NCBI RefSeq assembly: GCF_001194135.2 | Contig: NC_068987.1 | Location: 31,910,539 to 31,974,538, forward strand | DNA: 64,000 nt | Direction of reading: 5' to 3' | Origin: Octopus bimaculoides | Lineage: Eukaryota | Shown: positions 27,399-56,039 of the stretch, piece after piece | Position numbering within the stretch: the stretch's first letter is position 1 | Layout of the letters: each line of letters starts with the position of its first letter | Notes under the pieces: model-generated | What the model saw: only the letters and a program-made list of their open reading frames with translations | The model's database searches: none | Told to the model about the DNA's origin: nothing | Position numbers and translations under genes: made by a program

Positions 27399-27520
27399 AT
27401 GTTACAACTGTGCAACAAAACATACCAGAAGTGTTTGGTATGGACGATTGCAATCCTTCTCCTCACAGTTCATATCAGTGAACAGAGTAGTCCAGGAATG
27501 AAGAGGAAAATAGACTGTCG
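27399..27520 (+). CDS. elevenin: Elevenin (L11-type) neuropeptide precursor, first coding exon: signal peptide, KR site and start of the mature peptide
   Basis: Acceptor tgtttcattgcAG ends at 27371, ATG at 27399, donor cg|GTAGGT at 27521. The exon encodes MLQLCNKTYQKCLVWTIAILLLTVHISEQSSPGMKRKIDC plus 2 nt (CG). It has a hydrophobic signal-like core (CLVWTIAILLLTV), a dibasic KR and the IDC motif typical of the elevenin N-terminus. Confidence 0.9.
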
Positions 27521-27569
27521 GTAGGTATTATATTCTTAAATTTACATAACAGCAACAACAATACAGCCT

Positions 27570-28475
27570 AAAATTTTGGGTGAGGGTCTATTACAAAGTC
27601 GACCGTGGTGGAATTTGAACTCCGAACGTAAAGCCAGATGAAATGCCGCAAAGCGTTTTGTCCTACCTGCTAACGATTCTACCAGCTCATCGCCTTACTA
27701 ACAACCATAATAATTTTCTCTACTATAGGCACAAGGCCTGAAATTTAAGGAAAGGGACTAGTCGATTACATCGACTCTAGTGCTCAACTGGTACTTATTT
27801 TATCGACTCCGAAACGATGAAAGGCAAAATCGACTTCAACAGAACTTGAACTCATAATGTAAAGTGCGTCCAACAACAGCAACAACAATGATAGTAATCA
27901 TTTCTTTGTTATTGGCCCTGATGATCTTTCATACACACAATTAGAGCACATTATACATAGAAGTTTCAAACGCGAAGGGTAGCCAGAATAAAGGGTTGGA
28001 GTGTTATAAAAAGAAATGGCGGTAATGAGAGCGGCCATGCAGTAAATAATTGGGCATGTTAAAATTTTGATATAAGTTAAAGAGAATAAAAGGATAATTA
28101 TATAAAACATACAATAATTGAAAATATACAAAACAAATATTCATGAAAAACAGGTAAATAAAACGCTGGTGGAAACCCACCAAGCTGGCAAAAAGGTGTG
28201 GAAAGAAGCTATAGTTATGAGAAGTCTCGCTCATTTTAGTAGCTTCTTATTTCTTTATTGTCCACAAGGGGCTAAACATAGAGGGGACAAACAAGGACAG
28301 ACAAAGGGATTAAGTCGATTACATCGTCCCCAGTGCATAACTGGTACTTTATTTATCGACCCCGAAAGGATGAAAGGCAAAGTCGACCCCGGCGGAATTT
28401 GAACTCAGAACATAACGGCGGACGAAATACCGCTAAGCATTTCGCCCGGCGTGCTAACGTTTCTGCCAGCTCATC
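27570..28475 (-). mobile_element. Cluster of three antisense family-A SINEs at the start of the elevenin intron
   Basis: Reverse-complement matches to the family A consensus at about 27570-27705, 27715-27860 and 28247-28475. Confidence 0.8.
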
Positions 28476-28739
28476 GTCTTCATTTTAGTAGCTTCTTGCC
28501 GCACAGTCAAGCTACACAAAGACTTGCTATGCTCTTCCTTGTTTGTTTCTGTACTTGTTGCCCGAGCAAAAACGTGCTGTCCGGCTTAACAACACATTTC
28601 TCCCACGTCTTTTATTCTTCAAGTCGACCTAAACCTAAATATTCTTTGCGCATAACCTCGCTAGTATTATTGTTTTTAACAAGTTCATTATTTTTTCCCA
28701 TTTATAATGTTTATTGTATCTGCTTGTTGTAAGTCTTAG

Positions 28740-29715
28740 TCTTCTTTTTTCCGTTTGTCTTTTTAAAATCTACGTTATTCACATATTTGTATTGAGGGAT
28801 GTACCTGTTTATATGAGTGGTACCACCATTGTGACCACTCCACGATTGACGAAAATGCACGAGATAGCTCCATAAGTGAGCAATACTCAAGCACTGAGCA
28901 AGAGGTCAAGAATGATTTCATCATTCTGTGCACATTTCGGGAAGACTCGGCTCACTGCTTTTCCGTGCTTGTAAACGTTATTTCGAACTAGCGATGCTCT
29001 TCGGTAGTACTGCCAGGCCAGGATTTTCTGGAAATTATCCATGGGCCCAGGATAAAAAATCTACCAAAACAGACCAACCAGTTGATTTTCGTTGACACAT
29101 AGAGTTTCTTCATGAACGTCATCACCTTCTCTGCAGAACGCCATTGTAGAATTTATGCCGATCGCATTGTTCGACTGGTAGAAGATTGTGAGCGCTTGAT
29201 GACATTTCATATGCCAAATGCCCGCTCTCGATCATCGTTTATCAAGCGACGACATCACACCTGTTCCCCGTCAAGTTAGTACTGAAGCTGTGCATGCTAG
29301 CATACTATTAACCACTACATGTCCAGTTACCCACATAGTTAGTTTTAACAGCAGATGGACCGTCTGACAAGTGGAAAGCATCTCTTCCACAAAGGCAAGG
29401 TGCGGATACTCCAGTGTGACCAGATATGAACTGAGTCTAGGCACGACGGTCATGCGTAATAGATGACGGTGGCAATCTAGGCTTCCATTACTTCTGCTCG
29501 ATGCTGCAGGGTCAGCTTCCTTTTGGCCCATTTGAGAGTGAAACTGACCTCTTTGCTCGTTACCTCGTCCCAGTTTTTGCCAACCTGAAGATCTGGAGCA
29601 AACAAGTCCGTGCAGCTCCCTACGTCGCTGTTAGACAGCATGGATATACCATTCCTTAAGTTTAGCTGCAGGCCCATCAATTTATTTTGATTAATTTTGG
29701 CTCTTGTCACCGTCT
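28740..29715 (-). mobile_element. Tx1/L1-clade LINE ORF2 3' fragment
   Basis: TVTRAKINQNKLMGLQL, FAPDLQVGKNWDEVTSKEVSFTLKWAKRKLTLQHRAEV, and RMTVVP, typical of the post-RT region of this family. Confidence 0.75.
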
Positions 29716-32093
29716 GTATGTATGTATGTGTGTATGCCTGTCTGTCTGTCTGTATGTATGTATGTATGTATGCATGCATGTATGTATGTGTTGCTCAGCC
29801 TGTACGTCTGAGCAACCGCCACATATATAGGACCCTGAGCACCCTGTAAATCTGGTTACTTTTTTTCTTTTGGTGTCGGTATTGCAACTTAATACTGTGA
29901 GTATTCTTGGTGTTAATTAAGACGAGATGGCTTGTGCGTCATTTTCTTAACTGGAATTTAGCTGTTGATAGGCAATTGGTGTGGTAACTGGCATCGCTCT
30001 AAGGGGGTTACGAGACGGCGACAAGAGCCAAAATTAACCAAAATAGTTGATGGGCCTGTAGCTAGGCACCTGGAAAGTTATATCCAGGCTGTCTAACAAT
30101 AGTCTATTAATTAGGTGTCTATATATTCAGTCCCATGTCCTTAATCATTGTTTCTTTCAGGTCGTTCAACAGACATACAGGTTATCTGGGGGGGGGGGGT
30201 TCAGAAAACCTCTACTTGAAGGGCTTCCAGACTCTTTCCTGCTTTTGATCTGGATTCATTCTTTTATTTGCCCCTTTTGTTTCTTTTTATACTCTCTACG
30301 AAAATTTCCAACTTTTCAAATATCTCTACCCTACTGTAACGTAACAAATTAGTAAAATCGCTACTGCTGATGCTGCCTAAAGCCTCTGGTCGGTCTTATG
30401 CTTAAAGGGGAGAGACCTAGATTTCTTGATGCCGCTATATCACCTATGGCCTCCTTGCACTAGGAACTCTCAAGACAAGACGATCTCATTTGCTTCAGCT
30501 CTGGGTATTTTTAGACATAAGACTCGTGATGCGCCTAAAACAGACGCAGCAACAGCCACAGTTTCCACTTTAGTAGCCTAAAATAACCACTGCTTCTACT
30601 GCGATATTCCAACCTCTCTTTTTCTTTTGCTTTCTCTCTTCTAATAAACCTTCCGACTACATATTGCTTTGAGCCACTTCCACTTTGTTAGGTGGAAGAA
30701 TTTATGCCTTCCGCTTAGAACAAACAGCGGGCAAAGTTGAAGAAAGCGCTCAAATTCTCAAGCCATGGTGCAATAACGATCCAGCATCCTGATTTTAAGA
30801 AAAAGTTCTTAAAAAATCGAGTTAACAGCAAACTGGGAAGTTTTATCTTTTATCTTTTACTTGTTTCAGTCACTTGACTGTGGTCATGCTGGGGCACCGC
30901 CTTAAAGAATTTTAGTCGAATGAATCGACCACAATACTTAGTCTATTTTCGTAAAAGCGGCGAGCTGGCAGAATCGTTAGCATACCGGGTGAAATGTTTA
31001 ACGGTATTTCGTCTGCCGGTTACGTTCTGAGTTCAAATTCGCTGAGGTCGACTTTGCCTTTCATCCTTTCGGGGTCGATTAAATAAGTACCCTTTGTTTG
31101 TCCTCTCTATGTTTAGCTCCCTGTGATCAATAAAGAAACAAGCATTTTCATAAAACATGGTACTTATTCTTTTGCCGGACCGCTAAGTTAAGGCGACATA
31201 AAAACACCAACTTTATATTCACTTTATATTCTTCAGAATCTGTTAGAGCACATGCAAGCGCTAATATATGATCTATAAAAACATGTGACATATTAATAAA
31301 AATCTGTAAATGTACAACCATCCAGATCTCTGAGTACCTTATTATTTTTTCTAATATATAATATACACGACGGGCCTCTTGCAGTTTCCGTCTACCAAAT
31401 CCACTCACAGGGCTTTGGTCAACCCGAGGCTGTAGTAGAAGGCACTTGCCCAAAGTGCCACGCACTGGGACTGAACCCGGAACCAGGTAACTGAGAAGCA
31501 AACTTCTTACCACACAATCACACCTATACCTATACATTGCGTTTATATAGAACAAGAAATGCCTCAAATATGAAGAATTTAAGAAATCGTGTGAGATACG
31601 AAGATGCTAACATACGGTATTTCCTGTACTCATAGGATATTGTGAGTTTGTGGAAAGATCGATTGTAACCTATTTAGATGAAATTAAACTTAGGGTAAAG
31701 AGTAAGGAAGTGATTCATGAGCTGGGAAAGTTAGCAGAAACTGCTTCACCATGGATATGACAGATATTTGCAATAGAAAGACCAAAGAAAAGGCGATATC
31801 ACCAACGAGCAGTAAAACAAGTCAGTTACTGCTCGACTGGAGTGGTTATAACAGTGCACAGCTTAATGTAGTGGATGAACAGATAACGAAGGAAAAAGCA
31901 TGCTACAGTGTGATCCCAAATATTCCGCATATTTCCTACTAGAAAAAAATACTGCATTGTTCAGTGGAAAAGACAATGTCGGAAGTTGCCGAAATATTTG
32001 TGAAGCAATCGATAACTGATTAAGAGCGTGAGCGTGGGCCACGTGTTACAAATAAATAAATGTGTTTATATATATATATATATATATATAGAC

Positions 32094-32145
<52 letters not shown>

Positions 32146-34399
32146 GTATTCACTACTTAGTAGCTATGTCATTAATTTTGAAATTACTTCTAATCGGAAA
32201 CTAAAATAGAATTTATTCTTTTGTAAAACTATGTATCTAAAATAAAGTCCTACGCATTCGTNNNNNNNNNNNNNNNNNNNNNNNNNNNNNNNNNNNNNNN
32301 NNNNNNNNNNNNNNNNNNNNNNNNNNNNNNNNNNNNNNNNNNNNNNNNNNNNNNNNNNNNNNNNNNNNNNNNNNNNNNNNNNNNNNNNNNNNNNNNNNNN
32401 NNNNNNNNNNNNNNNNNNNNNNNNNNNNNNNNNNNNNNNNNNNNNNNNNNNNNNNNNNNNNNNNNNNNNNNNNNNNNNNNNNNNNNNNNNNNNNNNNNNN
32501 NNNNNNNNNNNNNNNNNNNNNNNNNNNNNNNNNNNNNNNNNNNNNNNNNNNNNNNNNNNNNNNNNNNNNNNNNNNNNNNNNNNNNNNNNNNNNATGTTTC
32601 TATTCTTTTACGTCGACTGAATGATAGAAAATAGTGATTCTACAGTTAATGACTAGAAAATTAAATTATAATTGCAGTAATAAATGCAAAATTAGGCCAA
32701 TTTTCATAAACATATCTGCACTTCCCCCGCATTTTAAATCCTTTATCATGTTATATACTCACCGAAGCTATTGTGCTTGCTTTTCTTTTTTCCTTTCTTT
32801 CTGTTTCTTTTTTTTTAAATGATAATCAGTAAACATTTTTACACCGTTTGATTGTTTATATTGTTTGTGGCCCACTTCTGCTTGTAGTATCCAGTGATAG
32901 TTCATATCAAAATGAATAATTTTCCTCGGGATTAATAGTTCAGCGAATATAGGTTTTATTATATGGAAGATGTGCTTGCAAAAAAAATTACAGATTAAAG
33001 CTAAGGCTACTTTCAATTCATCTAGATATTGATAAACAAATCTCTCAACGTTCCTTATTTGATATGATCTAAACAAACTATCCTTTCATTTCCGTTTGGT
33101 AAATAAATGCGTCGCCTCTCCATTGACAGTCAAGTCATACGAGCGAAAACTGAGGATAAGGATATCATGGAAACAATTTGAAACTGCTGGAGCTTTGTAG
33201 ATTAAATAATATATATTTACTTCTGATGTCTGTATATTTATGTGATATTTATGTCGGTCTACTTCCAGTCGAAATATGACTGAATTTGGCCGCTAACGTT
33301 GCGATGTTTTTATTGTCGAAGTTACTTAAATCTTATATGATCAATTCATCTTAATAACGAATAGGTACAATAGTTATGTTGTTGGAGTCGTTTAGCTCGA
33401 GGTTAGTTCTGACTGTGTAGACAGATTACAGAAGTCTTTCCAGCCATGATCAACCCATTATTTGTAGGAAATTGTGTATCTAAACCTACGTCATTTAGTG
33501 TGTCTTAAAGAAAAGACAATGGTTATGTATAACACAATAGTGTACATAGATGAGAAGCAACTCTCAATTATACTATTGTTTCGTTAGCTAACTGTCTTGC
33601 CTGCGTTCAATTCCTAGTAGGATATAATTTATATAAAGATAAAAGAAAACCATGCTGATTTGCCAGGGGTAAAGCTGATGGAATAGGAGACTTCCGGAAT
33701 CTCGCAAAGACCAAATAGACTATAGAACTCAAATATAACACCAGCTATTTGTATGAATGTATGTATGTATGTATGTATGTATGTATGGATGGATGGATGG
33801 ATGGATGGATGGATGTATGCATGTATGCATGTATGCATGTATGTATGTATGTACGTACGTATGTATGTATGTATGTACGTACGTATGTATGTGTGTGTGT
33901 ATGTATGTATGTATGTATGTACGTATGTAATTATTCAGTTTCATTCCAAGATTTTTTGCCAACAGAGAAAGAGGTTTTTAACCTAGATCTAAGGCTTATA
34001 CATTGGAATTTCATCAACATCAGTAGGGTATTTTTGCATGCATGTGTGCATATGTGCAGTATTTAGGACCCGTGCATGTATAGATTTGTATGTTTTGTTT
34101 TATGTATGTATTCACATATATGTGCATACATACTCAACTGTTAAACTTCTGGAAAGTTTTACAAATTTTTATAGTTCCAGTGATGGCTTGAATATGTAGT
34201 CATCGAATTAGCTTTCTCCTTTCTGGTTTGAGAAGCCTAATTTGTCACGATTGGTGCTTAGGCTGTGCGTTACATAATCCAGTGCCCCAATAATTACAGC
34301 TATAAAGCTGAATTTGTAATCCGGGTAGAGAAACTGAGTTTCTCAAAAGTTCAGCCTAAGTATTTCGTTTTTCACTGATCTTTAGCTTATATTGACGCC

Positions 34400-34648
34400 T
34401 GCCGCGCAATTGATTTCCACTACGGTACACAGATTCTCTTCTCTGTCCCAAATCACAGTGTCCGATCTAATAGTCTACATTTTATTGAAGTTTTCACTGG
34501 GACATTCCACCGATGTTCTTTCATATTATGAGTGGCTATGGCCTCTGTCATACTGTGGGTTCTTATCTCTTTGGTCACAGGATTGTCCTTCCGACGGACC
34601 ACATACCGTATCTTGGTTAAAACATCGTGTCTCATCGGTAGATGAGAC
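34400..34648 (-). mobile_element. Fragment of the same R4-like REL family
   Basis: The minus strand reads SHLPMRHDVLTKIRY..RWNVPVKTSIKC, which parallels YYLSMRHDVIAKTIY..WNIPIKTSVKC at 58270-58440. (CATA)n lies on its 5' side. Confidence 0.75.
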
Positions 34649-34885
34649 GTATGTATGTATGTATGTATGTATGTATGTATGTATGTATGCATGTATGTTT
34701 GTATGTATGTATGTATGTATGTGTATATGTACAGGTGCAAGTATAACAGGAATAACAAGAAAAAGAAAGTGAATATACAGAGTACTTATTAGATTGACAT
34801 GATGAAAGGAAAGGAAGAAGTGTCTATAAGATTTCGATCATAAGGCTCTTCTTCGGGAACATTAGAACATCTATCTTTGTTTGTA

Positions 34886-34923
<38 letters not shown>

Positions 34924-35471
34924 CGTGCGTGCGTGCGCGATCGTATGTACATGTATATGTGTATATATATGTGCGTGTGCGCATATATATATATNNNNNN
35001 NNNNNNNNNNNNNNNNNNNNNNNNNNNNNNNNNNNNNNNNNNNNNNNNNNNNNNNNNNNNNNNNNNNNNNNNNNNNNNNNNNNNNNNNNNNNNNNNNNNN
35101 NNNNNNNNNNNNNNNNNNNNNNNNNNNNNNNNNNNNNNNNNNNNNNNNNNNNNNNNNNNNNNNNNNNNNNNNNNNNNNNNNNNNNNNNNNNNNNNNNNNN
35201 NNNNNNNNNNNNNNNNNNNNNNNNNNNNNNNNNNNNNNNNNNNNNNNNNNNNNNNNNNNNNNNNNNNNNNNNNNNNNNNNNNNNNNNNNNNNNNNNNNNN
35301 NNNNNNNNNNNNNNNNNNNNNNNNNNNNNNNNNNNNNNCCCTCTGTCTGTCCTTGTTTGTCCCCTCTATGTTTAGCCCCTTGTGGGCAATAAAGAATATA
35401 TATATATATATTTGTGTGAGTGTATATGTGTATTCATATGTGTATACATGTGTGTGTATGTGTGTCTGTAC

Positions 35472-35528
<57 letters not shown>

Positions 35529-37963
35529 CATGTGTTATGTGTGTGTCACTTTTTATGCTACTGGTAACATGTTACGCAATACAACCTGTCGCATGGTCGA
35601 GCCGTCGGCGACTAACCCGCAACCCTACCAAGCTTGCTTTGTAAGGAGGGTCATTTCCGTTGGACACACTACAGGACTAAAAACAAAACCTGTCAAAGGG
35701 TGGATGAACTCGATAGAATCAACGGCCATCCAAGAGCTGGGAGTGAGACCCACCTAGTTTGAGTTTAAATATCTTTCCAAAAGGAAACTTCAGATGTAAC
35801 ACCTGTGACTTCGTTTGCAACCAATGCTTGTAGAAACCCTTCCTTTTGGTTAATTAAATATGTTATTTAGTGAATGAGATTGGTCCTGTGCAAGACCTTT
35901 CCTCAATTTAAAATGCAGTAGGCACAGGCATCGCTATTTTAAAAAATCTCATTATATATATATATAAATTATCTTCACATTTCATTGAAAATCATCAACA
36001 AATGCTGCTAGGTTTTCGTTTTCTTTCTCAAAAAGGAAAGTTTCAATTCATTGATAATTTTTTTTTCTTTTGCATACGTCATTCAGTACATCACCAACCT
36101 GATTTAACCAAAAAAATGTCATAGGTCTTACGTTATTTCCATTAGCTGACTTTTTGTAAACATCTAAATGTATGTATGTTTATATATGTGTATTCAAAAA
36201 ATAATAGCGTTGATAATTACAGTAGATAGTTATTGTATACGCGCGCGCGCGCGTGGTGTGTGTGTGTGCGTGTGTGTGTGTGTGTGTGTGTACAGATCTA
36301 CCTGGTCTTAGTGGTGGTCTATTTATTTAATTAAACGAAGTAATATGAAACATTAGCAAATGTTTGTACCCGAGGTTGTGTGTACAGATTTCATTTAAAC
36401 TGCTGTACTTGAGCTTTAAATGTCGTCACCGATATGAGTAATACTTTATATGTAGGCATAAATAGAAGTTCTTATTAAATGCCTCACGAAGTGGGGCAAA
36501 TAATTTCGTTGTGGTGAACATTCTTTTTATAGGAACTCGCAGAAACGACTTACTGTTTTAAATAACTCTTTAACTAAGCATATAGCTCATGTTAGATTAG
36601 ATAAAGGAAGGGTTGCGTTCAAAGTTGATTTTTTCCATGGAGAGAAACGGAAAATATGTTGGCTGAATAAAATACATCATGATCAAGCTAACATGTCAGT
36701 GACGAATGTGAACTTAGGACATCAAAACAATGGTGGCAAAGGTGTCGTGTCAGGAGCTAGATTTGAGCTACAGAACCCAAAACAAGTTACCAAGTGGTCC
36801 TGTCACAGCTTATTATGACTTCTGTATTGGTTACAGGATTATTTGCAAGGCTTACTAGTCTGAGGAGGTGTGGTTAACAACCTGCGTAATTCGAAGGAAG
36901 TGTGCTATTGAACAGATCTTTGTTGACTGCCGTTTTACTTTCGTTTTTGTAATGTGACTACTTAATTAGCTGGTTGTTCATCAAGTGAAGTAAATTTATA
37001 CTTATCCCTGCTGGTGAATCTAAAATGGCTGGCATAAGTTGTCCTGGTAGTTATTGCAAAACATGCCATCATCAGCTAATGATAAAAGCTACAATGAGAA
37101 GAGGGCCGTTAATGGAATTATGTGACGTCATAACGGAACGGGACAGAATATGCGGATGTTGGCGAGAAGCAGAAAATCAAAATGTTCTTGAAATGGCCCA
37201 CTGTTTGAGTTGGTTCTTTTTCTTGTATGATTTTTTTTTTTACCCCTGTCGCAGTAATAGNNNNNNNNNNNNNNNNNNNNNNNNNNNNNNNNNNNNNNNN
37301 NNNNNNNNNNNNNNNNNNNNNNNNNNNNNNNNNNNNNNNNNNNNNNNNNNNNNNNNNNNNNNNNNNNNNNNNNNNNNNNNNNNNNNNNNNNNNNNNNNNN
37401 NNNNNNNNNNNNNNNNNNNNNNNNNNNNNNNNNNNNNNNNNNNNNNNNNNNNNNNNNNNNNNNNNNNNNNNNNNNNNNNNNNNNNNNNNNNNNNNNNNNN
37501 NNNNNNNNNNNNNNNNNNNNNNNNNNNNNNNNNNNNNNNNNNNNNNNNNNNNNNNNNNNNNNNNNNNNNNNNNNNNNNNNNNNNNNNNNNNNNNNNNNNN
37601 NNNNNNNNNNNNNNNNNNNNNNNNNNNNNNNNNNNNNNNNNNNNNNNNNNNNNNNNNNNNNNNNNNNNNNNNNNNNNNNNNNNNNNNNNNNNNNNNNNNN
37701 NNNNNNNNNNNNNNNNNNNNNNNNNNNNNNNNNNNNNNNNNNNNNNNNNNNNNNNNNNNNNNNNNNNNNNNNNNNNNNNNNNNNNNNNNNNNNNNNNNNN
37801 NNNNNNNNNNNNNNNNNNNNNNNNNNNNNNNNNNNNNNNNNNNNNNNNNNNNNNNNNNNNNNNNNNNNNNNNNNNNNNNNNNNNNNNNNNNNNNNNNNNN
37901 NNNNNNNNNNNNNNNNNNNNNNNNNNNNNNNNNNNNNNNNNNNNNNNNNNNNNNNNNNNNNNN

Positions 37964-38017
<54 letters not shown>

Positions 38018-38287
38018 CATGAATGTAGGCATATATTTATACGTGTAAATATGTGTTGTGAGATGTACAGATGCGGAGATAGCGAGGGAGGTATTTGATT
38101 TCACCGTTTTTTATGTTTTGGTCATATTTTGGTAAGTGAAACTTTATACCTGGGATGGGAGAATGTAATTTCATCTGACCAAAAACCGCTCTACGCACAC
38201 AGGAAAATAAATTCCTTAAACTCTCACAATTTAAACACAACACAGATCAGATTACGTTTCTGTACATTGATATGTGCTTCAACAAGC

Positions 38288-38329
<42 letters not shown>

Positions 38330-38478
38330 CACATACAAATGTACACACATGAAAACGCACACACATTCACATACACACAGTCTCCCACACATATATACAT
38401 ATCAATACTCTCTTTCTATATCTAAAACTTCTGTTATGTTTATGTGTGACAATACATAAAATAACATTTGTTAATTCA

Positions 38479-38509
<31 letters not shown>

Positions 38510-39006
38510 CGTACGTACGTACGTACGCACGCATGCATGCATGCATGCATGTATGTATGTATGTATGTATGTATGTATGTATGCCTGTATGTATGTATGT
38601 ATGCATGTATGTATGCATGTATGTATGTATGTATGTATGTATGTATGTATGTATGTATGTGTGTATGTTTGTATCAGTTAATTAGTTGGTTGTCTCTTTG
38701 GTAAGAAGAATCGCTTTTCAGAATACATATTGCTAACGTTTTTTCTCATTAATGGAATAAAATATTTCTTTTTGTAATTAGTTAAATATTCTTTTTTTTT
38801 TCTGTTAATCATAGAATCCTTAGCATCCATATATAGCCGCTATTTCGATCTCTTTAGATCTCTTCAGAACGAAGCTGTTAGAAGACTAGATTCTATCAAA
38901 CTTTACATGACATTAAATTAAAGGAGAAGGAAGTAGAGGGAGGTGTATAATGAAATATTTCTTTCGGATAAAACATTATCTTTCAAAGTTCATTAGTAGT
39001 GCGAGA

Positions 39007-39092
<86 letters not shown>

Positions 39093-39246
39093 AACTTAAT
39101 TTGAATTTTACCTATAGCAGCGCGGCGAACTCATTGACGGAGTCGGTGAAAATTCTCTGATGAACTTACCTGATGGAATGCCCGAACGATTAATGAAGCA
39201 ATCGATTAGTTATTTGGCTAAATGGTTAACTAGTTGACTAATGATG

Positions 39247-39322
<76 letters not shown>

Positions 39323-39586
39323 TGATAATAATAATAATAAAAGAAATGAAATAGAATCAGTGCGGGTGTTTAACATTGATATACTGAACCTATCGAAATG
39401 CAACAAAATACACGTGAAAATGCTGTCTGAAAATGATGCTTTATATAAAGCCACATATATTGAATGTTTACTCGTATTTTGACAGTGTATTCAATAATAC
39501 TTAATACTACCTAGATTACTATACAGATTTTATTTGGGAAAGCATTTACATCTGCTTTCCCAAATAAAACTGCATTTTATATTTGA

Positions 39587-39795: not shown

Positions 39796-39860
<65 letters not shown>

Positions 39861-39954: not shown

Positions 39955-40241
39955 AAGTGCTTCCGAAAGTGGGCGGCACCGCCGGCTTGAAGGCGGTGAA
40001 AAGATGCGGGCGTTGAAGAAAAATGGGGCGATAATGGGGTGACCAAAACGGGGCAATGGAGGTAAAAAATCAAACAAAATAAAGGGTTAATTAGTTTAAG
40101 ATTTATTTGTGAAATGCTGTTGTTTTGAATTTGCTGCAGAAAATGGTCTATGTCTGCGATGGTGAGTGGAGGGGGGGGGGCACTACGAGTGAGGCCTTAG
40201 AAAAAAGGGGGCGACACCCTGAAAAAGTTTGGGAACCACGG
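39955..40241. mobile_element. Non-autonomous hAT (Charlie-like) MITE inserted in an older repeat
   Basis: Ends aAGTGCTTCCGAAAGTGGGCGG ... AAAAGTTTGGGAACCACGG resemble CAGTGGTTCCCAAA-type TIRs. The flanks GTATAAGA (39946-39953) and GTATAAAA (40242-40249) fit an 8-bp TSD. Confidence 0.7.
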
Positions 40242-40304
40242 GTATAAAAGATGGGCTGCAACAAATATTCTGCTCAATACCACAGATTTGTAGTAGTACC
40301 ACAA

Positions 40305-40344
<40 letters not shown>

Positions 40345-40358
40345 GCTACTACTACTAC

Positions 40359-40411
<53 letters not shown>

Positions 40412-40659
40412 GTACATATATGCATATGCTTGTGTACACACACGCACACACACGCACACACACACGCACACACACACACACACGATCATATTCAGCACAT
40501 TTGTATACACTCGGACTTGAGGAGACCATTTGGATCGTTGAGCAATAAACAACCGATTTTGGTATTCGTAGCTGGTCGAGCGTAACGACGCAGAAATACA
40601 TGCATTTTACGGATCCATGATGTTGTTATTCATAGTTGAATGATATGATTTTACACGTA

Positions 40660-41072
40660 CAGGTCGTCGGCGACTTACGACCTATCCGACATACGACCGA
40701 TCGACTTTACGACGATTGGCGCACCAGCTACCGGCAGCAATAACAAATAGACCAGTTAAAATCTAACGCTTCCCCAAGGAAGCGTCGTTGAAATCTAACG
40801 CTTCCCTTCTGTGTTGGATGACTATCCCTTCGCGGAGACATCGAGGCAACCTCGTATTTGTTTATAAGACTACTGCTTCAGACACCAAAATTTTTGACTA
40901 ACGCCAGTATAATAGCATAATAGAGAATGCTGTGCATGAGTTTTACCTGAGAATGTACCTTAAGAATATAAAAATATAAAACAAAGCTATGTAGGCCTAT
41001 AGGCCGACTTACGACCAAATCGACTTACGACCAGCCAGTCGGAACCAATTGTGGTCGTAAGTCGATGACTTG
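40660..41072. mobile_element. Tigger/pogo-like MITE
   Basis: TA then CAGGTCGTCGGCGACTTACGACC at the left; GGTCGTAAGTCGATGACTTG at the right (imperfect TIR). Internal CGACTTACGAC subterminal repeats; no ORF. Confidence 0.65.
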
Positions 41073-42059
41073 TGCTGTCTATGAATGGATTTTTCCCGAA
41101 TATATTTCTGCAGCAAAAGTCTTCCTACGTTCGTGTGTATACAAACGTATTAAATATGATTGTATATGCACATATTTTATTGAACGCAGGTTTGTGTACT
41201 TCTGGTTAACTCCATACACACACACACACGCACACACATACACACACGTGCATACGGCAAATATAAATGCATATATGCATATTACTTTCTTCTCCATCCA
41301 TTTATACATGTACATACATATAAACGTACATGTATAAGCATATGTGTGTGTGAGTTTGTGTATGTGCGTATGTATGTATTATGTTTGTATGTACACGTAT
41401 GTATATATACATATAACAACATATAAATAATAAGGCCCACGCGTTTGCGGAGGGTACGATACGGGCGTTTATTTTGTTTGAAGTGCGGTTTGACTTAGCA
41501 TGTCTCGTCCATAATTTCCAGACATTTCTATATATGTGTATGTATGCATGTATGTATGTATGAATGTATGTATGTATGTATGTATGAATGAATGTATGTA
41601 TGTATGTATGTATGTATGTATGTATGTATATATGTAGGTATGTATTTCTTTGTGCATGTCTGTGTCTATGTGTGTATTTATATAAGAATGTATAAATATG
41701 CGTTTGGTTACTACTATAGGAAGGCATCGCCACAACTGTACTTTAATAAATCATTTAGTGAACTATCGGTTACGAGATGATTCCGGCAGACTTCAGATCA
41801 ATAATTACTTTTTTTTTATGTAAACACGAGTTTGATGTAAAGGAAGGAAGGAAAGAAAGAAAGATAGATGGAAAGAAAGAAGAAAGAAACTTAGAACAAA
41901 ATATAGATAAAAATGCAATACCAAAGCTTAACAGAAGAAACAAGCTGAAAGTAAATAAAAAAAAAGGTAATGAAATTATCTCTATTTGTATATCTGTGTT
42001 TGTATTGGAATGGCATTGATCAAGAAAGAAAATATTGGAAATAGTTGTTTCATTGTGTG

Positions 42060-42114
42060 ATATTACATATCATCGTCGTTGTAATCACCGTCGTCATCAT
42101 CATCATCACCGTCG

Positions 42115-42154
<40 letters not shown>

Positions 42155-42240
42155 ATCACCACTACCACCACCGTCGCATCATCGTCGTCGCATCATCATC
42201 ATCATTATCATCATTATGAAACAACAACAATATTTGTACT

Positions 42241-42281
<41 letters not shown>

Positions 42282-42412
42282 TAGTAGTAGTAGTAGTAGT
42301 AACAGTGGCAGCAGTAGTAGCAGCGGCTGTAACCACTATTATCTTCATCATAATCTTCATCATTGTCACTGCAATCAGCACCGCCACTATCACCACGATA
42401 GTAACAAGAGCT

Positions 42413-42499
<87 letters not shown>

Positions 42500-42560
42500 G
42501 CCCCTAGCATCAAAGCAATATCAAAACAACAACCACAGCTATCATCATTATTATTATCAT
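42060..42560. repeat. Compound trinucleotide microsatellite (CAT)n/(CAG)n/(TAG)n
   Basis: Seen directly; it explains the poly-H/A/V/I ORFs. Many other (CA)n, (TA)n, (GA)n, (TATG)n, (TAA)n and (TAG)n tracts occur across the window, e.g. 1590-2150, 5690-5775, 33750-33930, 38480-38660, 39010-39090 and 39240-39340. Confidence 0.95.
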
Positions 42561-43039
42561 CACCCTCACCTCTCCTGCCGCAATCTACAACTGAATCAGC
42601 GTCTCTTAGCTTATTCATCACAACTACCTTTGATGGCGCCACCCACGCAGTCTCTGATAGAACTAATTGTTTAAAAGGAGCTTCTACCAAGTCGCTCAAC
42701 TTCTAAGATATAGCAACCAAATATCCCTCAAATCGTATCTTACTGTCTAAGACAGGAAAGAACAAAATAGATTATATGTGTATGTGTATATAGGTACGTA
42801 TTTATGTATGTCTGTATGGGTATAAATATATATATATGATAGATGTATATATACATGATAGAAATATATATACATGATAGAAGAACCCTTATACACGTTA
42901 AAGTTAATTTAAATCTGAAATTATACATTCAAATTATTTATTAATTATTTTAATGTGAATATCTAATATTTAGTAGACTTGCCCTTTACATTTTTCAATG
43001 CAAGGATCTTATTAGGCATGCTACCGATCTAATGACGAA

Positions 43040-43890
43040 TATTCTCTTGAGAAATTTCTTGTCAAGTTTCATGCAGTAATCTCAATAGATCTGGCTGTGA
43101 GTATGCTTTGCTCTTTTTATAAATTATTCTGTTCGTTATGACCCAGAGGTGTCCAATAGAGGTCATATCTGGTGACTGGCTTGGCCATGGAAGCTTTTTA
43201 ATGCCATTCTCTTCCAACCAGCCTTGGGTCTTTTTAGCCGTGTGACAAGGAGCCCCATCTTCCATAAATAAAGAGTCTTCTTTAATAATTTCACCACTGG
43301 AAAAGATTGGAAGGAGTCCTTTCTACAATATGGATCTGAGTTTATGCTCTCTTCAAACTCCACCAGCTCTGATCGACCATCGCTCCAAATTGCTCCCCAG
43401 TCCATCACAGAATAGCTGCCGTATTTAATTGTTGGCTGCAAGCTTTTCACTTCAAATTCTTGATCACAGGGTCTCCAGACCCACTCTCGACTACTGTCAG
43501 AAAATACAGCAAATTTGAACTCATCAGAGAATATGACAGTCCCAATGCCTCTCCACCATCTCACTGGCCCAATCTTTTCTTTGCTTGATATTGACTGGTC
43601 GAAGAAGTGGCTTCCTTCTTGCTGCTCTGCCATAGTAGCCAAGTTTGTGGAGATACCTGACAACGTTTCTGGGATTGACATCAACATATTCTGCTGTCAG
43701 AAGCCTTGAAACAAGGATTATCCTCCACACTTAACTTAACACAGCGAAAGGTCCTGTCAGAGGGCCCGAGTCGACCTGGGCGAGGTAATGTGGACTCCTT
43801 GCCCTCCCTGGTGAATTTCACAATCACTCCTTTAACTGTAGAAAGTGGGATCCCAATGTTTTCTGCGATTTTATTCTGACTATGTAACAT
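43040..43890 (-). mobile_element. Decayed Tc1-family (DD34E) transposase
   Basis: Overlapping ORF fragments: [17 protein letters not shown] (HTH), GRAARRKPLL, VIFSDEFKF, VMDWGAIW, EDGAPCHTAK, WPSQSPDMTSIGHLW. The catalytic E is replaced by G and the frame is broken. TIRs were not clearly found. Confidence 0.9.
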
Positions 43891-44035
43891 GATTAAACAA
43901 CTACATATAGAATCTGAAACATAAATATGTCAATTAATACAAAATATAAAACTTTTCAAGTTAAAATAAGCATAAAACTATGTTTTATGGCGTGTCTACT
44001 TACTTCTGAAATACATTATTTACATTAGTTACATG

Positions 44036-44349
44036 CCCATGGGAATATGGTGTAGTGGTTAAGAGCACGGGCTACTAACCCCAAGATTCAGAGTTCGATT
44101 CCAGGCAGTGACCTGAATAATAATAATAATAGTAATAATAATAATAACAATAATAATAATAATAGTTTCGAAAAATACCTTAGGAATGAGAAGCCAAGTT
44201 CGAAATTTCCCCAAGACACCTGATGAAGGCTGGAGGGTTTATCAGCCGAAATGTTGTGTTAACAACAAACAAGATGAGGACAAGTATCCGTCAATTGTAA
44301 ATAATGTAAATAATGTACATAATTCCTCATTTTTTTAAAATATGGAACT
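44036..44349 (+). mobile_element. Composite SINE: tRNA-like head, (TAA)n spacer, and a Penelope-like 3' part carrying a hammerhead motif
   Basis: A box TGGTGTAGTGG and B box GTTCGATTCC (44041-44115), (TAA)n at 44116-44163, and a hammerhead core at 44215-44260. Confidence 0.7.
44215..44260 (+). ncRNA. Minimal type-I hammerhead ribozyme motif (Penelope type)
   Basis: GACAC-CTGATGA-A-GGCTG(gagggtttat)CAGCC-GAAA-TG-TT-GTGTT: intact core, 5-bp stem II, and stem I GACAC/GTGTT. Confidence 0.7.
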
Positions 44350-44373
44350 GTACTTCTGTCATGTCTGTGTATA

Positions 44374-44493
44374 TATTAATATTTAGCAGAAGCAACAGAG
44401 TGATTCAAGTTCCGAGAGTTTCGTGTGTTTTGCACCAACGGCACGAAACTCTCGGAACTTCAGTCACTCTGTTGCTTCTGCTAAATATTAATA
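44374..44493. repeat. Long near-perfect inverted repeat (52-bp arms, 2 mismatches, 16-nt loop)
   Basis: TATTAATATTTAGCAGAAGCAACAGAGTGA-ttc-AAGTTCCGAGAGTTTCGTG / CACGAAACTCTCGGAACTT-cag-TCACTCTGTTGCTTCTGCTAAATATTAATA. Confidence 0.95.
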
Positions 44494-44566
44494 AAAATAT
44501 ACATGTGCTCATATTCTGAGTTCTATGTTTTTTGTTTCCATCAACATACCTATATATATACATATT

Positions 44567-44628
<62 letters not shown>

Positions 44629-45053
44629 ATATTTATCGTTTAATCAGTTACGTTGCACCACGAGAATCTCCGTGTGGAAACAGCACCTTTTACTCTCAGA
44701 AATAAAGAGACGTTAAGCCCGATTCGAGCAACCACTTCTCATCAAAAGAAAATATAAAATAATCTAATATATTATTAAATCCGTCCGAGGATATAGCAAT
44801 GTGCAGTACAACTAGAAACGGAGATGAAAATAGGATGAATTCTTTGTCTTTTTTTCTTTTCTCTTTTACTTGTTTCAGGCATTTGATTGCAACCATGCTG
44901 GGGCACCGCCTCGAAGATTTTAGTCAAACAAATCGACCTCAAGACTTATTATATTTTTGTAAATCCTAGTACTTATTCTATCGGTCCTTTTGCTGAACCG
45001 CTTCGTTACGAGGACATAGACAAAACAACACCGGTTGTGAAGCGGTGGTGGAA

Positions 45054-45118
<65 letters not shown>

Positions 45119-45740
45119 ACACGCACACATACAGATATATGCATATATATACGACAGGCTTCTTTCAGTTTCCGTCGACCAAACCCACTCACAAGGTTCT
45201 GGTCGGCTCGAGGCTATAGTAAAAGACATTTACCCGAGGTGCCACGCAGTGGGACTGAACCCGGAACCATGTGGTTGGGAAGCAAGCTTTTTACCACACA
45301 AACACCCCGCAAAAAAAGACAACAAAAAAAGAAAAAAGCAGAAGACGTACTGCTCAATTTCCACTAGCCCCGTTTCGTTAATTGAAGCCAAACTGAAGTT
45401 GCCATATAAAACGATATAAAGAGGTCTGTTATAAATATATTTTGCTGCAGTTTCAGATATCTTCATGCGGTTGACAGTCTGGTGAGGAAATTTGTTTTTG
45501 ATAATAAACATTGCTATATTCACAGCGATAAATGGATGGGAACGGTAAAAGGCTCTCCATATATTTTGTATATACGAGTTGCGTTTAGCTCGTTGTAATT
45601 ATTCCAGCTTTCAGAGGTTTTTACAAACCTCACGTACCTCTGGAATTTCTCTTGTGTACCCTTAGGAGTGTGTATACCTCAGTTTGAGAACCGCTGATCC
45701 AGATAATCGCAAGACAGCTAAGGACACAGCTTGTTGTCTT

Positions 45741-45778
<38 letters not shown>

Positions 45779-47674
45779 CATGTGTGTGTGCATGTGTGTG
45801 TGTGTGTGTGTTTGTGTGTGTACGTGCGCGTGCGCGCGCGCGTGCACTTTATTCAATTAACCACTAATTTTACTGGTACTTATTTGATCGACTCCGAAAG
45901 GATGAAAGACAAAGTCAACCTCGGTGGAACTTGAACTCAGAACATAAAGATAGACGAAATGTCGCTAAGCATTTTGCCTGGTGTGCTAACGATTCTGCCA
46001 GCTCACTGCTGTAATCTATGTAATCGACTCACCCCCTCCCCGGAAATTGCTGGCCTTGTGCCAAAAACTGGAACCGTTATTACTACAGTTTTTAAATCCC
46101 TTCGTTAGAAAGTTCTACTTTTTTCCTTTGTCTTTTTCTTAAATGGATTACCTATTTAATAAAGACCAAAGAAAAACTCAGGAGATTAATTATGCTTCCA
46201 CCACATATCATATGACCTAATCTATTATTTGTGTATAAGTATTATTCAGGCGGTGAGATTGTAGAATCGATGTTGTATTTGTTGCAGCTCTTTACGTTAT
46301 GAATTCATATCTCATCGACGTCAACTTCGTTTTTCGTCCTTCTAGAAGCAAAAATTGTTTAAAACTACATAAAGACCGGGATCTTGTATGACTGGTGACA
46401 GGATAATAATGTAATGTTTAACTTAACAATGCTTCGTGTTCTATCCTTGCGAAAATGGAGTATTATATGAAATCCTTACACAATCAGATTATCTGGAACT
46501 TTGGAAACATTATATCCAAGCATGTAATGTTATAATATTATAGACGATATAAGGTGGTGGATTGGCAAAACTGGTAGAGAGTTGGACAAATTGGTGGAAG
46601 AGCTTAAGATAAAATGGATAATTCGTTACCGCAACTTCTTCCATCCTTTCAGGGTTAGTTAACCTAAAACACAAGTAAAGTACTTGAATTGATTGAACCA
46701 AATATATCCTCCTGTTCCAATGTTAAAAATCAAAAATCAATAACATAGAAAACAGAGTTTAAATCACGATTTACACAACATCATCGTTCGTCATTCTGGA
46801 CTTGATGAAATAACGTTCCGGCAATAAACCGTAGTGGATCTTATCAAATGCACTTTCCATCAAAATATTTGTCTGCGTAACAGTTTTAAAAGTCAATATT
46901 ATAGAGGGTATTGCTTCGAGCTGTATCAATCATTAATTAGAAATATGGTCTCCTTCGATAGTCCTATACAAATACATTCCTTTAACTATATCTTACTTTA
47001 AAAGCATAATTTCTGTAAAATTTCTAAACAATTAACGATGATAGTAAATGCTGAAGAATTACATTGTAAAATGCAGAACAGGGACAGACACCGCGATTGT
47101 ACATGTGTAGGCCTTCTTACATTGAGTTATCTCATCAGTAAATGTCCTATTGTTATTTCAGAACTAGCTTTAACGTTTAACATTTAGCTCGAAAGATACC
47201 ATACTTCAGCATTCACAGCGAATAGATTTCTAAACAATACAGAAAGATATTTTCAACTTTCAAAACGTTAACCGAAATTCGAACAACACCGGTAATTTTA
47301 TTTATTATCTTAATATAATAGGAATGTAAAACTAGTTTCTGTTGAAGACGTTAAAATCATCTAAAAAAGCTTCGTTACAGGAGCTTCATCGTCAGTAGGG
47401 TATAATAGGTGTGAGGCAGCTTACTTACTGCAACTAACTCGATCGTCATGAAAGAATATACGACTACTGACAATCCGGAAATATCAGTAAAATACTAAAC
47501 ACAAGACATAATTGCACTTCAATAAGTCTTCTGACATTACCAAGATTAACAATTGATCAAAATTATATGTCTGTATTTATATACAAAAATATATATAACA
47601 CGCACACGCGCTCACACATTAGTGTGTGTGTATATATATATATATATGTGTGTGTGTGTATGTACGAGTATATG

Positions 47675-47725
<51 letters not shown>

Positions 47726-48158
47726 NNNNNNNNNNNNNNNNNNNNNNNNNNNNNNNNNNNNNNNNNNNNNNNNNNNNNNNNNNNNNNNNNNNNNNNNNNN
47801 NNNNNNNNNNNNNNNNNNNNNNNNNNNNNNNNNNNNNNNNNNNNNNNNNNNNNNNNNNNNNNNNNNNNNNNNNNNNNNNNNNNNNNNNNNNNNNNNNNNN
47901 NNNNNNNNNNNNNNNNNNNNNNNNNNNNNNNNNNNNNNNNNNNNNNNNNNNNNNNNNNNNNNNNNNNNNNNNNNNNNNNNNNNNNNNNNNNNNNATATAT
48001 ATACATATGTAGTGTAAACTGTCGATGAAAAGATTACTCAATACCATAATAGAGTTTAAAATATATTTCATATTTTAGTCGAGTCAGTCTCTTGCTATTC
48101 TGAGTTTCACCTGCTGCTGCACAGGATCTTCGCTTCGGAAACACATGCATACATATAC

Positions 48159-48210
<52 letters not shown>

Positions 48211-50003
48211 TCTCTTCTTCCTTCTTTCTGATGAAGGATTGATGTTCAAAACATATAGGCGCTCTTATTTCATTCAATTTTTGAGGATTTATGCAAGGAC
48301 TATATTTCTCAAACTTTGTTCTTCATGTATTGCTCATTTTAATATTTATTGATATTTATTCACCTTACAAATCTACCTATCTATCTATTTATTTATCTAT
48401 CTATCTATCTATCTTTCTATCTATCTATCTATCTATGTATTCCTTTATGGAACCAATAAGGTTCTCAATTATTTTTACAGAGTGCATTGAGGCATTTCTT
48501 CTGAGCTCATCTTCTGATATCCAGCTTCTAACCTTTTGTTTTCCTGGAACACAAGACACCTGTTCAACTGCAGTGTTTGAGTTTTGTTTTGGCATTCTCA
48601 ACAAGTCAGCTTGAATTTCACTTCACTGAAATCCCGCTTCTCGGTGAAAAAACTAACAATTGTATTTTTATTGACTAACAATTAATTCACACCGAAAGTG
48701 TGTAAATTTGTTGTATCCACTCAGTTCAATACTTAGTAGTAAACCGACCAATTTAGCCCCAAAAGAGCTGTCTTACTTAAATTATCAGCTAATGAAATAC
48801 AGTGGGTTGCAAATTGGGAAAAAAAAGAAATAAGACACATTAAAACTTTCACATATTCTGTTTAATGTTTATGCGATTTTTTTTATTCATGAATCAGGAT
48901 TTACCAAGATTTATTATGTAATTTTACATACGATGATAAGTACTTTATCAGTTATAAAATTACTCCCAATAATAAAATTTCGAATAGATGTAGCCCTTAA
49001 AATACACGCAAAATTTAAAATATCCATTTTTACCCGATATGTCAGGTACTATAGCTTCATTTCCTTTTCAGGAGCATATTTTCAAATCTTACAGTGCTTC
49101 AAACGAATTAAAAGAAAATACTGTATATTGTTTTAAAATAAATATTACACTATAAAGTGTAATATTTATGTATTTATTCAAACTTGAGTGGCCAGATCAT
49201 CAGGTTAAATAAATAAATAAATGAATAACACCGTGTCTTGAATATTATCATTCGTTTTCGTTTACAAACTGTGACACTAGAATATGTGTATATGCACATA
49301 CAAACATGCATATATACAAGCATACATGTATGTATGTATGTATGTATGTAGGCATGTATGTATGTACATACATTTTACAAAAATGACGCCACACAAATTA
49401 TTGCAACAAGAAAATTGAATTTGATTTCTATTTTTCTTTCTAAATTCCCGGGGCTATACATATTGGATGGTTGTTAATGAGATAGAAGGTTGTCGAGTGT
49501 TTTGTTCAAGACCTCCTCAATGGGTTTATTGCATTTTAATGAAACTCATTCTATTCAAGATTTTTATTTTACGTAGACTTATTACATCCACTTATCACTT
49601 CACTCAGTGAAGTGAATCGCGGTTAAGTTCCATCCCTATCAATGTCTTCTCTGAAACATGTGTTTTTAAAATTCTACACGCCTAAGTTTGTTTCATTAAA
49701 CGACAGATATTCGTTTAATCAGTGCTAAAAGCCAAAGAATTTCTTTTTGCTTTCATTTTTTTTGCTTGCTTTTATTTTTTATTTTAATTTTTTGGGGGGG
49801 TTTATTATTTAGAATGAACTTTCATATTAATTAACAGCAAGTTATATTTTTATGTTTGTTTTTTCTTTTATTGTCTTTAATCAAATAATGAATAAAAGAA
49901 TAGACTAGAATGTTGAAAATGGTGTATTGAAGTTTTATTAAAACGCTTTGTCTTTATTTGCAAAAATTTTATTACAAATCTTAGTTTGTATTTTTTGGCT
50001 CTT

Positions 50004-50050
<47 letters not shown>

Positions 50051-51339
50051 CTTACTGGTTAAAGTATTGGGCTCACGATCGCAGAGTTATTGATTTGCTA
50101 CCTAGGACAAAACGGCATATTGTATTGATGAGCAAAACATTTTATTTGATACGGCCTCAATACATTAAGCTAAAATGAGTGTTAGTGGCACTTGCAGGCT
50201 AACCCTGAAAAAAGTTGAATTCCTGTTCAAGGTGGAGTCTTCGTCACTCAGCCTAAATGTCTTGAAAATTCAGATATTCTTTGACCTCACAAGTCTATAA
50301 GCACAAAGCAGACATGGCAAGATTCTATTCTCTCGATTTTGCATAGATTTCTAACATAGGCAGGAATTCACACAAATTTCGAAACGGAACAGTCAATTAT
50401 ATCGAGCACAGAATTTCATTGACATTTGATTTTATCGGAACCACAAAGATGAAAAGCAAAGCCTACCCACAAAATGCATTCTGACGTAACTAAGTAACAC
50501 TTCAACGTTACTCTCAATCCACTGTCAATACTTTCGTTTATTTGCTAGCATTCAAAACTTAGTACAAAATACTTTCCAATATGTAGGAGATGTATAAATT
50601 ACAGTCATATAAAAGCGAGAGATAGAGAAAGACTGTTATACAAGATATATATAGGAAAAATAGAAGTTGAAAATGCACTGAAAATAGTTAAAATATTTTT
50701 ATTAAAATATTTGAGCTTTAACCGGTTTCACAGTTTACACTGATTTTCAAAATGTTCAAATAGAAAGACGTCGCTTATGTCACAGCTGTCTTGTTTCTGA
50801 CAAGTGTTTAAAGTTTGCCCTGTTTTTATAGGGAGGTCATGGCTCAAATTAGTCTGTTTTGAATAGGATTTGATTGGTAGAGGATAGTCACATGACTGAT
50901 CTTAGAAATTTTTGTAGGTTCCCACTACGTCCGTGTGTTAGTATCAAGTGACAATGTTTGGCATCGTAAGTTAAGACTGATACAGTTGACTGAACAAGTC
51001 CAAATAATCAATGCTCTGAATGTTTTCTCTTAAGTGCTTGTAGAGAATGAACATATTATTAAGTTTATAACTTTTTGTACGTTTCTCGCTACGTCATTGC
51101 GTTAGTGTCATGCGACAGTATATTTTGCGCCTAAAAAGAGGGTCAATATGGTTGAGTGAACTAGTTTAGTTATAATCAAGACAGACCAAATTTAATCTGT
51201 CTGGTGGAAGAGTGGACAGGAGTCGTTTGTATGGAGGTCCAGATATATGAACAATCTAAATTAATATATGGCCTGAACTTCCACAAATATCTACTAGAAA
51301 ACTGGAAACGTTACTTAGATTACTGCCTAATCCTATGGA

Positions 51340-51990
51340 CGTAGACATTTGAACGACTTATAGATTTCAAAAATCTAATCAATAGCATAAACAATATTAA
51401 CTTTACCATGGAATATAATAAAACTCAACTACCATTCCTGGATATACTAATCATCAAAAGAGATAAAATCATCGAAGCAGATATTCACTACAAACAGACA
51501 GATTATAAACAATACTTACTATTCTCTTCATGCCATCCCAAAGACACGAAGAATATCTCCTTCAATCTAGCAAGAAGAATCTGCACAATTGTCTCAAACC
51601 CTGAAACTCGCAATAAAAGACTCCAGGAACTAAAACAAGTACTACTTAAAAACAATACTACTTAAAAACAATATCCATTAATGCTCATAGACAACGGAAT
51701 AGAACGTGTCAAAACAATAAAAATCGAAGAACTATAAAAAAAACCTCTCCAGATGCATCCAATAATCTGCCCTTTATTGCAACACACAAACCAAGTAACA
51801 TAGAGGTTTACAATATAACTCACCAGAACATCCCACTTCTAAAACAAAACCCAAAAATAAAACAAGCATTTGAAATACACAAAATAATCAGAAAAGACAA
51901 TCAAAGTCCCTTAAAAAATTCCTCACACGTGCTAAATCCCCGTCCACAATTCTTACACCAACAGTCAAAAACTGTGGCCACCCCAAGGGT
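51340..51990 (+). mobile_element. Penelope-like element RT C-terminal fragment
   Basis: NFTMEYNKTQLPFLDILI..IHYKQTDYKQYLLFSSCHPKDTKNISFNLARRICTIVS matches the PLE FT.E...LPFLD..Y.KPT..YL...S.HP motif. A 17-bp tandem duplication (TACTTAAAAACAATAC) breaks the frame. Confidence 0.8.
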
Positions 51991-52206
51991 CAACATTCTC
52001 GCCATTATCATTTACTGTGTTCCTTGTGTTCCGGTTCTTCAGACTTAATAATGATAAAAGAGTTATACTTCACAGATTTATATATACGTTCGTGCTGTTT
52101 ATCTTTCCTGGATCGATAGGTTACTGAAGTGCTATTATAACCCACCCTCCAAATTTGAGGCTTTGAATCTATGTTATAAATCATTACTTTTTCTTTTCTT
52201 TTTCAG

Positions 52207-52287
52207 GAAGTATATATATGCACCAAGATGTCGAGGTGTCGGTGCCAAAAGATCATTCCCAATGACGAACTTTCAAGACAAAGAACG
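52207..52287 (+). CDS. elevenin: Elevenin precursor, second coding exon (81 nt, phase 2-2): rest of the mature peptide and the KR cleavage site
   Basis: Strong pyrimidine tract tttttcttttctttttcAG ends at 52206; donor cg|GTAAGG at 52288. Joined in phase to 27520 it reads (R)KYIYAPRCRGVGAKRSFPMTNFQDKE(R). This gives C-X8-C and the APxCRGVxA-KR signature of elevenins. Confidence 0.9.

Positions 52288-55968: not shown

Positions 55969-56039
<71 letters not shown>

Follow-up and report, generated by a model that had tools for sequence, protein, structure and literature searches.

LOC106868937, almost certainly the elevenin (L11) precursor gene of Octopus bimaculoides, carries a phase-2 intron of about 24.7 kb within the predicted peptide

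Introduction

Elevenins are neuropeptides of 17-20 residues with two cysteines 8 residues apart (PMC10175484, PMC9963005), encoded in precursors that have an N-terminal signal peptide, one peptide copy near the N-terminus with flanking basic sites, and a C-terminal tail of low conservation. In Aplysia elevenin, I4, D5, C6, F11, P13, C15, R16, G17 and V18 are conserved and functionally important; receptors are known from Platynereis, Aplysia, Nilaparvata and Ixodes, those of Aplysia signalling through inositol monophosphate (IP1) accumulation and needing the disulfide of the peptide for activation (PMC10175484). A phase-2 intron within the neuropeptide-coding sequence is a known characteristic of elevenin genes (Veenstra 2019, PMC6585902), and two phase-2 introns were reported in the Lautoconus gene (PMC9963005). 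In cephalopods, elevenin-like peptides were reported from squid brain (PMC10172372), the Octopus sinensis ortholog (UniProt A0A6P7SM57) was included in a published elevenin alignment (PMC9963005), and l11 (elevenin) serves as a marker of neuron types in a brain atlas of O. vulgaris paralarvae (PMC9712504). Here we analyse 64,000 nucleotides of O. bimaculoides DNA (RefSeq assembly GCF_001194135.2, NC_068987.1, positions 31,910,539 to 31,974,538, forward strand; hereafter the window, whose coordinates are used throughout), which contains the 5' half of LOC106868937, almost certainly the single-copy gene for the elevenin (L11) neuropeptide precursor.

Results

Gene structure and transcripts

The coding sequence starts in a 122-nt exon (27399..27520, + strand) encoding Met1 to Cys40 plus two nucleotides of Arg41, whose translation is 100% identical to the RefSeq protein XP_014769897.1, and which includes the predicted signal peptide, then EQSSPGM as a short pro-region, K35-R36 (27501-27506) and KIDC (27507-27518), the four residues with which elevenin begins. 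The second coding exon (52207..52287, + strand, 81 nt) contributes the last nucleotide of Arg41, KYIYAPRCRGVGA (to 52246), K55-R56 (52247-52252) and the first residues of the C-terminal propeptide, SFPMTNFQDKE(R). Between them lies a GT...AG intron (27521..52206, + strand) splitting the predicted mature peptide: its donor (GTAGGT) directly follows 27520, and its acceptor (TTTTTCAG / TTCTTTTCTTTTTCAG, AG at 52205-52206) ends a 16-nt pyrimidine tract before 52207. As exon 1 is 122 nt long, the intron is in phase 2, with CG|G restoring Arg41, and the joined translation reads MLQLCNKTYQKCLVWTIAILLLTVHISEQSSPGMKR-KIDCRKYIYAPRCRGVGA-KR-SFPMTNFQDKER (the N-terminal part encoded by exon 1 is MLQLCNKTYQKCLVWTIAILLLTVHISEQSSPGM, then KR before KIDCRKYIYAPRCRGVGA).

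Four Logan contigs assembled from public RNA runs (L002 from SRR32601320; L003-L005 from SRR16213284-6; 1.0-1.36 kb each) lack this intron and join 27372-27520 directly to 52207-52287 (GACTGTCG|GAAGTAT), matching exon 2 at 100%; the junction of 27520 to 52207 reads ...GAAAATAGACTGTCG|GAAGTATATATATGC... in all of them. Each holds an uninterrupted 327-nt open reading frame (ORF) with 5' and 3' untranslated regions (UTRs), and the mRNA encodes a 108-aa preproprotein. L002 terminates in Illumina adapter sequence, and L003 has AATAAA near its 3' end. L003-L005 come from another individual, another population or a very close species: they show several 5'UTR differences from the genome, and their coding changes (27405-27410, CAA CTG to CAG TTG) are synonymous only, leaving the protein identical, as expected under purifying selection.

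The gene was originally predicted by tool-free reading of the sequence. That prediction spliced the GT at 27521 to the AG at 52206, keeping the phase and creating a KR-peptide-KR arrangement after a signal peptide; this reads correctly to the base, and the 27520/52207 junction that it proposed for checking is carried exactly by the four independent RNA-derived contigs. The ORF at 27336-27524, described as covering the first half only, exists and ends at a TAG made by the unspliced donor. Regarding the predicted extent of 27399-52287, both exons are right, but 52287 is the end of an exon and not of the gene, being followed by a GTAAGG donor and by two more coding exons beyond the window.

The intron opened by this donor is also in phase 2, and its first 11.7 kb are in the window (52288..64000, + strand). 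Spliced mapping of P0002 on L001 (GCA_001194135.2, CM046607.1:31,927,937-32,002,925), the genomic locus of XP_014769897.1, placed coding exon 3 at L001 61335-61443 (window-equivalent 78733-78841) and coding exon 4, including the stop, at L001 64975-64989 (window-equivalent 82373-82387), both outside the window; the total is four coding exons, with introns that are all GT-AG and in phases 2, 2 and 0. L001 and the window are identical base for base over 46,602 nt (offset 17,398), including shared N gaps. A tblastn search with the full 108-aa protein found neither exon 3 nor exon 4 in the window, and the idea that they were concealed in its gaps at 53795-54007, 61261-61355 or 62897-63133 was rejected, since both were placed beyond 64000.

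Family membership of the predicted peptide

The predicted peptide has 18 residues, or 17 if cut after KRK, and its ring, C40-RKYIYAPR-C49, has exactly 8 residues between the two cysteines. I38, D39, Y45, P47, R50, G51 and V52 stand at conserved positions, Y45 being the aromatic residue of ring position 5 and P47 the proline of ring position 7, and eight of the nine important Aplysia residues (counting the two cysteines) are identical, F11 being replaced by Tyr. The motifs on which the original prediction relied, C-X8-C and APxCRG(V/I)xx before a dibasic KR, are thus both present. The precursor has a hydrophobic core at residues 12-24 (Kyte-Doolittle), KR(K) at 35-37, KR at 55-56 and a single peptide copy, which is the layout of the family. 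Predicted oxidised monoisotopic masses are 2066.067 Da (18-mer) and 1937.972 Da (17-mer).

A word-indexed protein search with the 68-aa product of the window returned one cluster, containing Octopus only: XP_014769897.1 (O. bimaculoides), XP_029639375.2 and XP_036360741.1 (O. sinensis, "abdominal ganglion neuropeptide L11-like") and three O. vulgaris records. Other phyla were reached by an exhaustive HMMER search: phmmer against 1.84 billion representatives gave 13 matches at E<=1e-3, including the ARS01362.1 cluster 'elevenin [Deroceras reticulatum]' (E 4.9e-4), a Plakobranchus 'abdominal ganglion neuropeptide L11' (6.1e-4) and a Physella acuta L11-like protein (5.1e-7), besides matches from Argonauta, Owenia, Lineus and Tubulanus. 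Invariant among the matches are C40, A46, P47, C49, R50, G51, K55 and R56 (A46, P47, C49, R50 and G51 in alignment A1, 14 sequences), and the alignment consensus, xDCRKYVFAPxCRGVxAKR, directly follows the hydrophobic N-terminus. The elevenin/L11 identity put forward in the original prediction, including the named matches expected from a homology search with the joined peptide, is therefore borne out by the transcripts, by the HMMER matches to named elevenins and by the hallmark phase-2 intron (PMC6585902).

Rfam models at gathering thresholds found nothing in the window. At 4842-4892, tblastn gave a weak match (VFVPHCRNVAVRQKFPI, E 0.12) that was considered as a possible second elevenin-like exon and then attributed to chance, as it has neither a correctly spaced second cysteine nor the RG motif.

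Annotation and conservation

The first 68 residues of XP_014769897.1 (LOC106868937, "uncharacterized protein", 108 aa) are 100% identical to the spliced product of the window; both represent the same gene, and the sole difference is the name, RefSeq having no elevenin label in O. bimaculoides. Since RefSeq already models LOC106868937, and XP_014769897.1 is structurally complete, the gene is not hidden. The original prediction had called it so, and this does not hold either in view of the L11-like name of the O. sinensis ortholog, the published alignment (PMC9963005) and the use of the gene as a brain marker (PMC9712504). The octopus elevenin gene is already known from a public model, making this a correct but ordinary find. 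The precursor is 99-100% conserved across three Octopus species, and neither the window nor the O. sinensis locus L006 (GCA_006345805.1) holds a second copy of exon 2.

The intron within the peptide-coding sequence

The assembled intron measures 24,686 nt, of which 1,648 are N, in four gaps: 32262-32593 (332), 34995-35338 (344), 37261-37963 (703) and 47726-47994 (269). All four gaps are intronic, and consequently the reading frame is independent of them; moreover, the mRNA has no sequence between the two exons, indicating that the gaps conceal no exon. The O. sinensis locus has no N; it presents the same exons and, at the same place, an intron measuring 23,537 nt, and megablast of window positions 27000-52700 against it gave a single collinear same-strand chain across every gap. 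The O. sinensis intervals matching the four gaps measure about 50, 300, 520 and 1,730 nt, in disagreement with the assembled sizes; the gap lengths are therefore nominal and the value of 24,686 nt is approximate. Almost all gaps of the window have TA, TG/CA or CT microsatellites at their edges, a probable cause of the breaks in the assembly. These gaps persist in the 'chromosome-level' v2 assembly.

The intron lies in the codon right after the first cysteine, at the same position and in the same phase in O. sinensis, Argonauta hians, Plakobranchus, Lineus and Owenia. Its length is about 24.7 kb in O. bimaculoides, 23.5 kb in O. sinensis, 34.1 kb in Argonauta hians, 3.9 kb in Plakobranchus, 9.6 kb in Lineus and 4.3 kb in Owenia. 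The splitting of the mature peptide by a 24.7-kb intron, as originally predicted, is thus confirmed, but it is a family hallmark and not peculiar to this locus, octopods being specific only in the size of the intron.

The 5' untranslated region and alternative isoforms

At 27372 all four RNA contigs switch from a 5'UTR sequence foreign to the window (...TTAATTCAG) to AAGCAAG. The 3' splice acceptor used, TTTCATTGCAG (27361..27371, + strand), ends the intron between a far-upstream 5'UTR exon and the ATG exon, in which 27372..27398 (+ strand) is 5'UTR and exactly matches L002 from position 755. The mRNA 5'UTR upstream of the ATG exon is at least 750 nt long (L002 1-754) and comes from one or more further exons; it was not found in the window (27 kb upstream), in L001, or in the 23 kb upstream in the O. 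sinensis locus. An 81%-identical, CT-rich, low-complexity match at 21712-21763, beside a gap, was rejected as a 5'UTR exon. With such a distant 5'UTR exon the locus is far larger than its coding part: it spans > 55 kb in O. bimaculoides, and the O. vulgaris model covers about 105 kb.

The ATG at 27399 is preceded in the mRNA by three in-frame stops, 16-18 codons upstream. These stops close the upstream frame and establish 27399 as the start codon, the genomic ATG at 27336 being intronic. Public annotation contains models with N-terminal extensions that would bury the signal peptide: P0001 of O. sinensis (X1, 119 aa; MQKQVYYRSRT...) and P0004 of O. vulgaris (150 aa; ...SYLIQKQVYYRSRT...). In addition, the O. 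vulgaris isoform record P0005 (CAI9725930.1) reads KIDCRYYIYAPRC, with the change K42Y precisely at the first complete codon past the splice junction. The O. bimaculoides sequence offers no simple alternative acceptor explaining K42Y, nor does the window or the O. sinensis locus contain a second exon 2; the change may be genuine or an artefact of annotation.

These records raise two alternatives. The first, to which we give a small probability, is that alternative first exons or splice variants of the octopod locus generate products beyond the canonical peptide; such products might be an N-terminally extended form that is not secreted, or the K42Y variant, and alternative splicing would then yield cell-type-specific elevenin isoforms. 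The second, that the extended isoforms of O. sinensis and O. vulgaris are the true products, with an internal hydrophobic segment and no classical secreted precursor, is very unlikely. The extended models do exist, and the genomic frame upstream of 27399 is open back to 27336, but this ATG precedes the acceptor ending at 27371, the upstream stops are present in 4/4 O. bimaculoides mRNAs, and the hydrophobic segment stands at the start in all homologs. Because the same frame carries three stops just upstream in the O. bimaculoides mRNAs, the extensions are doubtful, and they are probably annotation artefacts or species-specific features.

Other ORFs in the introns

A 146-aa ORF in the second elevenin intron (54373-54813, - strand) encodes a CCHC zinc knuckle (Pfam PF00098, E 4e-5) followed in our description by a tail rich in Lys and Glu, and is probably a retroelement gag remnant. 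A 174-aa ORF within the 24.7-kb intron (43163-43687, - strand; ...DWGAIWSDGRSELVEF...) resembles a transposase fragment when inspected by eye, and has no Pfam match at E<=0.01.

Discussion

Our results indicate that the locus is almost certainly an elevenin precursor gene. Its pre-mRNA is spliced at 27520|52207, and further exons are outside the window. By analogy with the family, the signal peptide (hydrophobic core 12-24) would direct the precursor to the secretory pathway before being removed. Prohormone convertases would then cut at K35-R36, possibly after K37, and at K55-R56, with a carboxypeptidase trimming the basic residues. The R41-K42 pair is presumably not cleaved, since it is within the ring and conserved across the family. 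The product would be the 18-residue (or 17-residue) peptide (K)IDCRKYIYAPRCRGVGA, non-amidated because there is no Gly donor, with a single C40-C49 disulfide closing a ring of 8 intervening residues; from the family and the work on the Aplysia receptors, it may be expected to act on rhodopsin-type elevenin G protein-coupled receptors. Some points weigh against this interpretation. The mature peptide and its disulfide are predictions, as are the place of the N-terminal cut (KR|K or KRK|), that of signal-peptide cleavage and the activation of a receptor; what the four RNA contigs demonstrate is transcription; and Pfam returned no family for the precursor, as it has no elevenin family and consequently no curated model is applicable.

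Cone snails recruited elevenin into venom (PMC9963005; PMC13542836), and a 2026 preprint on cephalopod salivary-gland toxins has L11 among its reference peptides, although this is not evidence of expression. The main octopus product might accordingly be a secreted salivary-gland (venom) peptide mimicking prey elevenin instead of an endogenous neuropeptide. We consider this highly improbable: in O. vulgaris l11 is a marker of particular neuron types of the sub-oesophageal mass and the optic lobe (PMC9712504), and the gene is single-copy, without another exon 2 in the window or in L006, and highly conserved, unlike venom paralogs. Finally, a chance juxtaposition of two ORF pieces or a dead pseudogene bearing an unexpressed elevenin-like motif, which the tiny exons (122 and 81 nt), the abundance of repeats and gaps in the region and the lack of a Pfam model might suggest, has a negligible probability and is already refuted by the spliced full-length ORF with both UTRs in four independent RNA contigs, as well as being contradicted by the near-identity of the protein in three Octopus species, the synonymous transcript differences and the exon structure kept in five other species.

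Identification of the locus as the elevenin gene has mainly practical value, as LOC106868937 can be relabelled elevenin (L11) precursor. The finding carries little weight beyond housekeeping. It does show that a tool-free reader is able to rebuild a neuropeptide split over about 25 kb. A comparative by-product is the phase-2 intron position that cephalopods share with a gastropod, a nemertean and an annelid, together with a 3-9-fold intron expansion in octopods; this agrees with a hallmark already in the literature and exemplifies the inflation of octopus introns, without raising a new question.

Among the closest described systems, the O. sinensis L11-like precursor (XP_029639375.2/XP_036360741.1) differs from that of O. 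bimaculoides by one substitution in the signal peptide (L22I); the mature peptides are identical, and the two genes agree in their four coding exons and in the phases of their introns. It also differs in its gap-free assembly and in the annotated alternative 5' exons that give the N-terminal extensions, unsupported by the O. bimaculoides mRNAs. The Argonauta hians ortholog (L007, P0006) has no basic site before the peptide (…HISEQAPGVDCRKHVFAPKCRGVGGGGKR), and therefore signal peptidase would set the peptide N-terminus; its C-terminus, unlike that of Octopus, is GGGG-KR, which could permit amidation. As in the precursors of Aplysia californica L11 (P06518), Deroceras, Plakobranchus, Platynereis, Nilaparvata and Conus elevenin-Vc1, the octopus precursor has one peptide copy directly after the signal/pro-region. 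It shares with Aplysia and other protostome elevenins the C-X8-C spacing, I-D before the first cysteine, A-P before and R-G-V after the second one, the KR stop site, the lack of amidation and the phase-2 intron inside the peptide-coding sequence. The octopus peptide differs in its length (17-18 residues versus 20 in Aplysia) and in its ring, where Tyr replaces Phe at two positions (YIY versus FVF), and its gene differs in the size of this intron, 3-9 times longer than in the non-cephalopod spiralians examined (3.9-9.6 kb).

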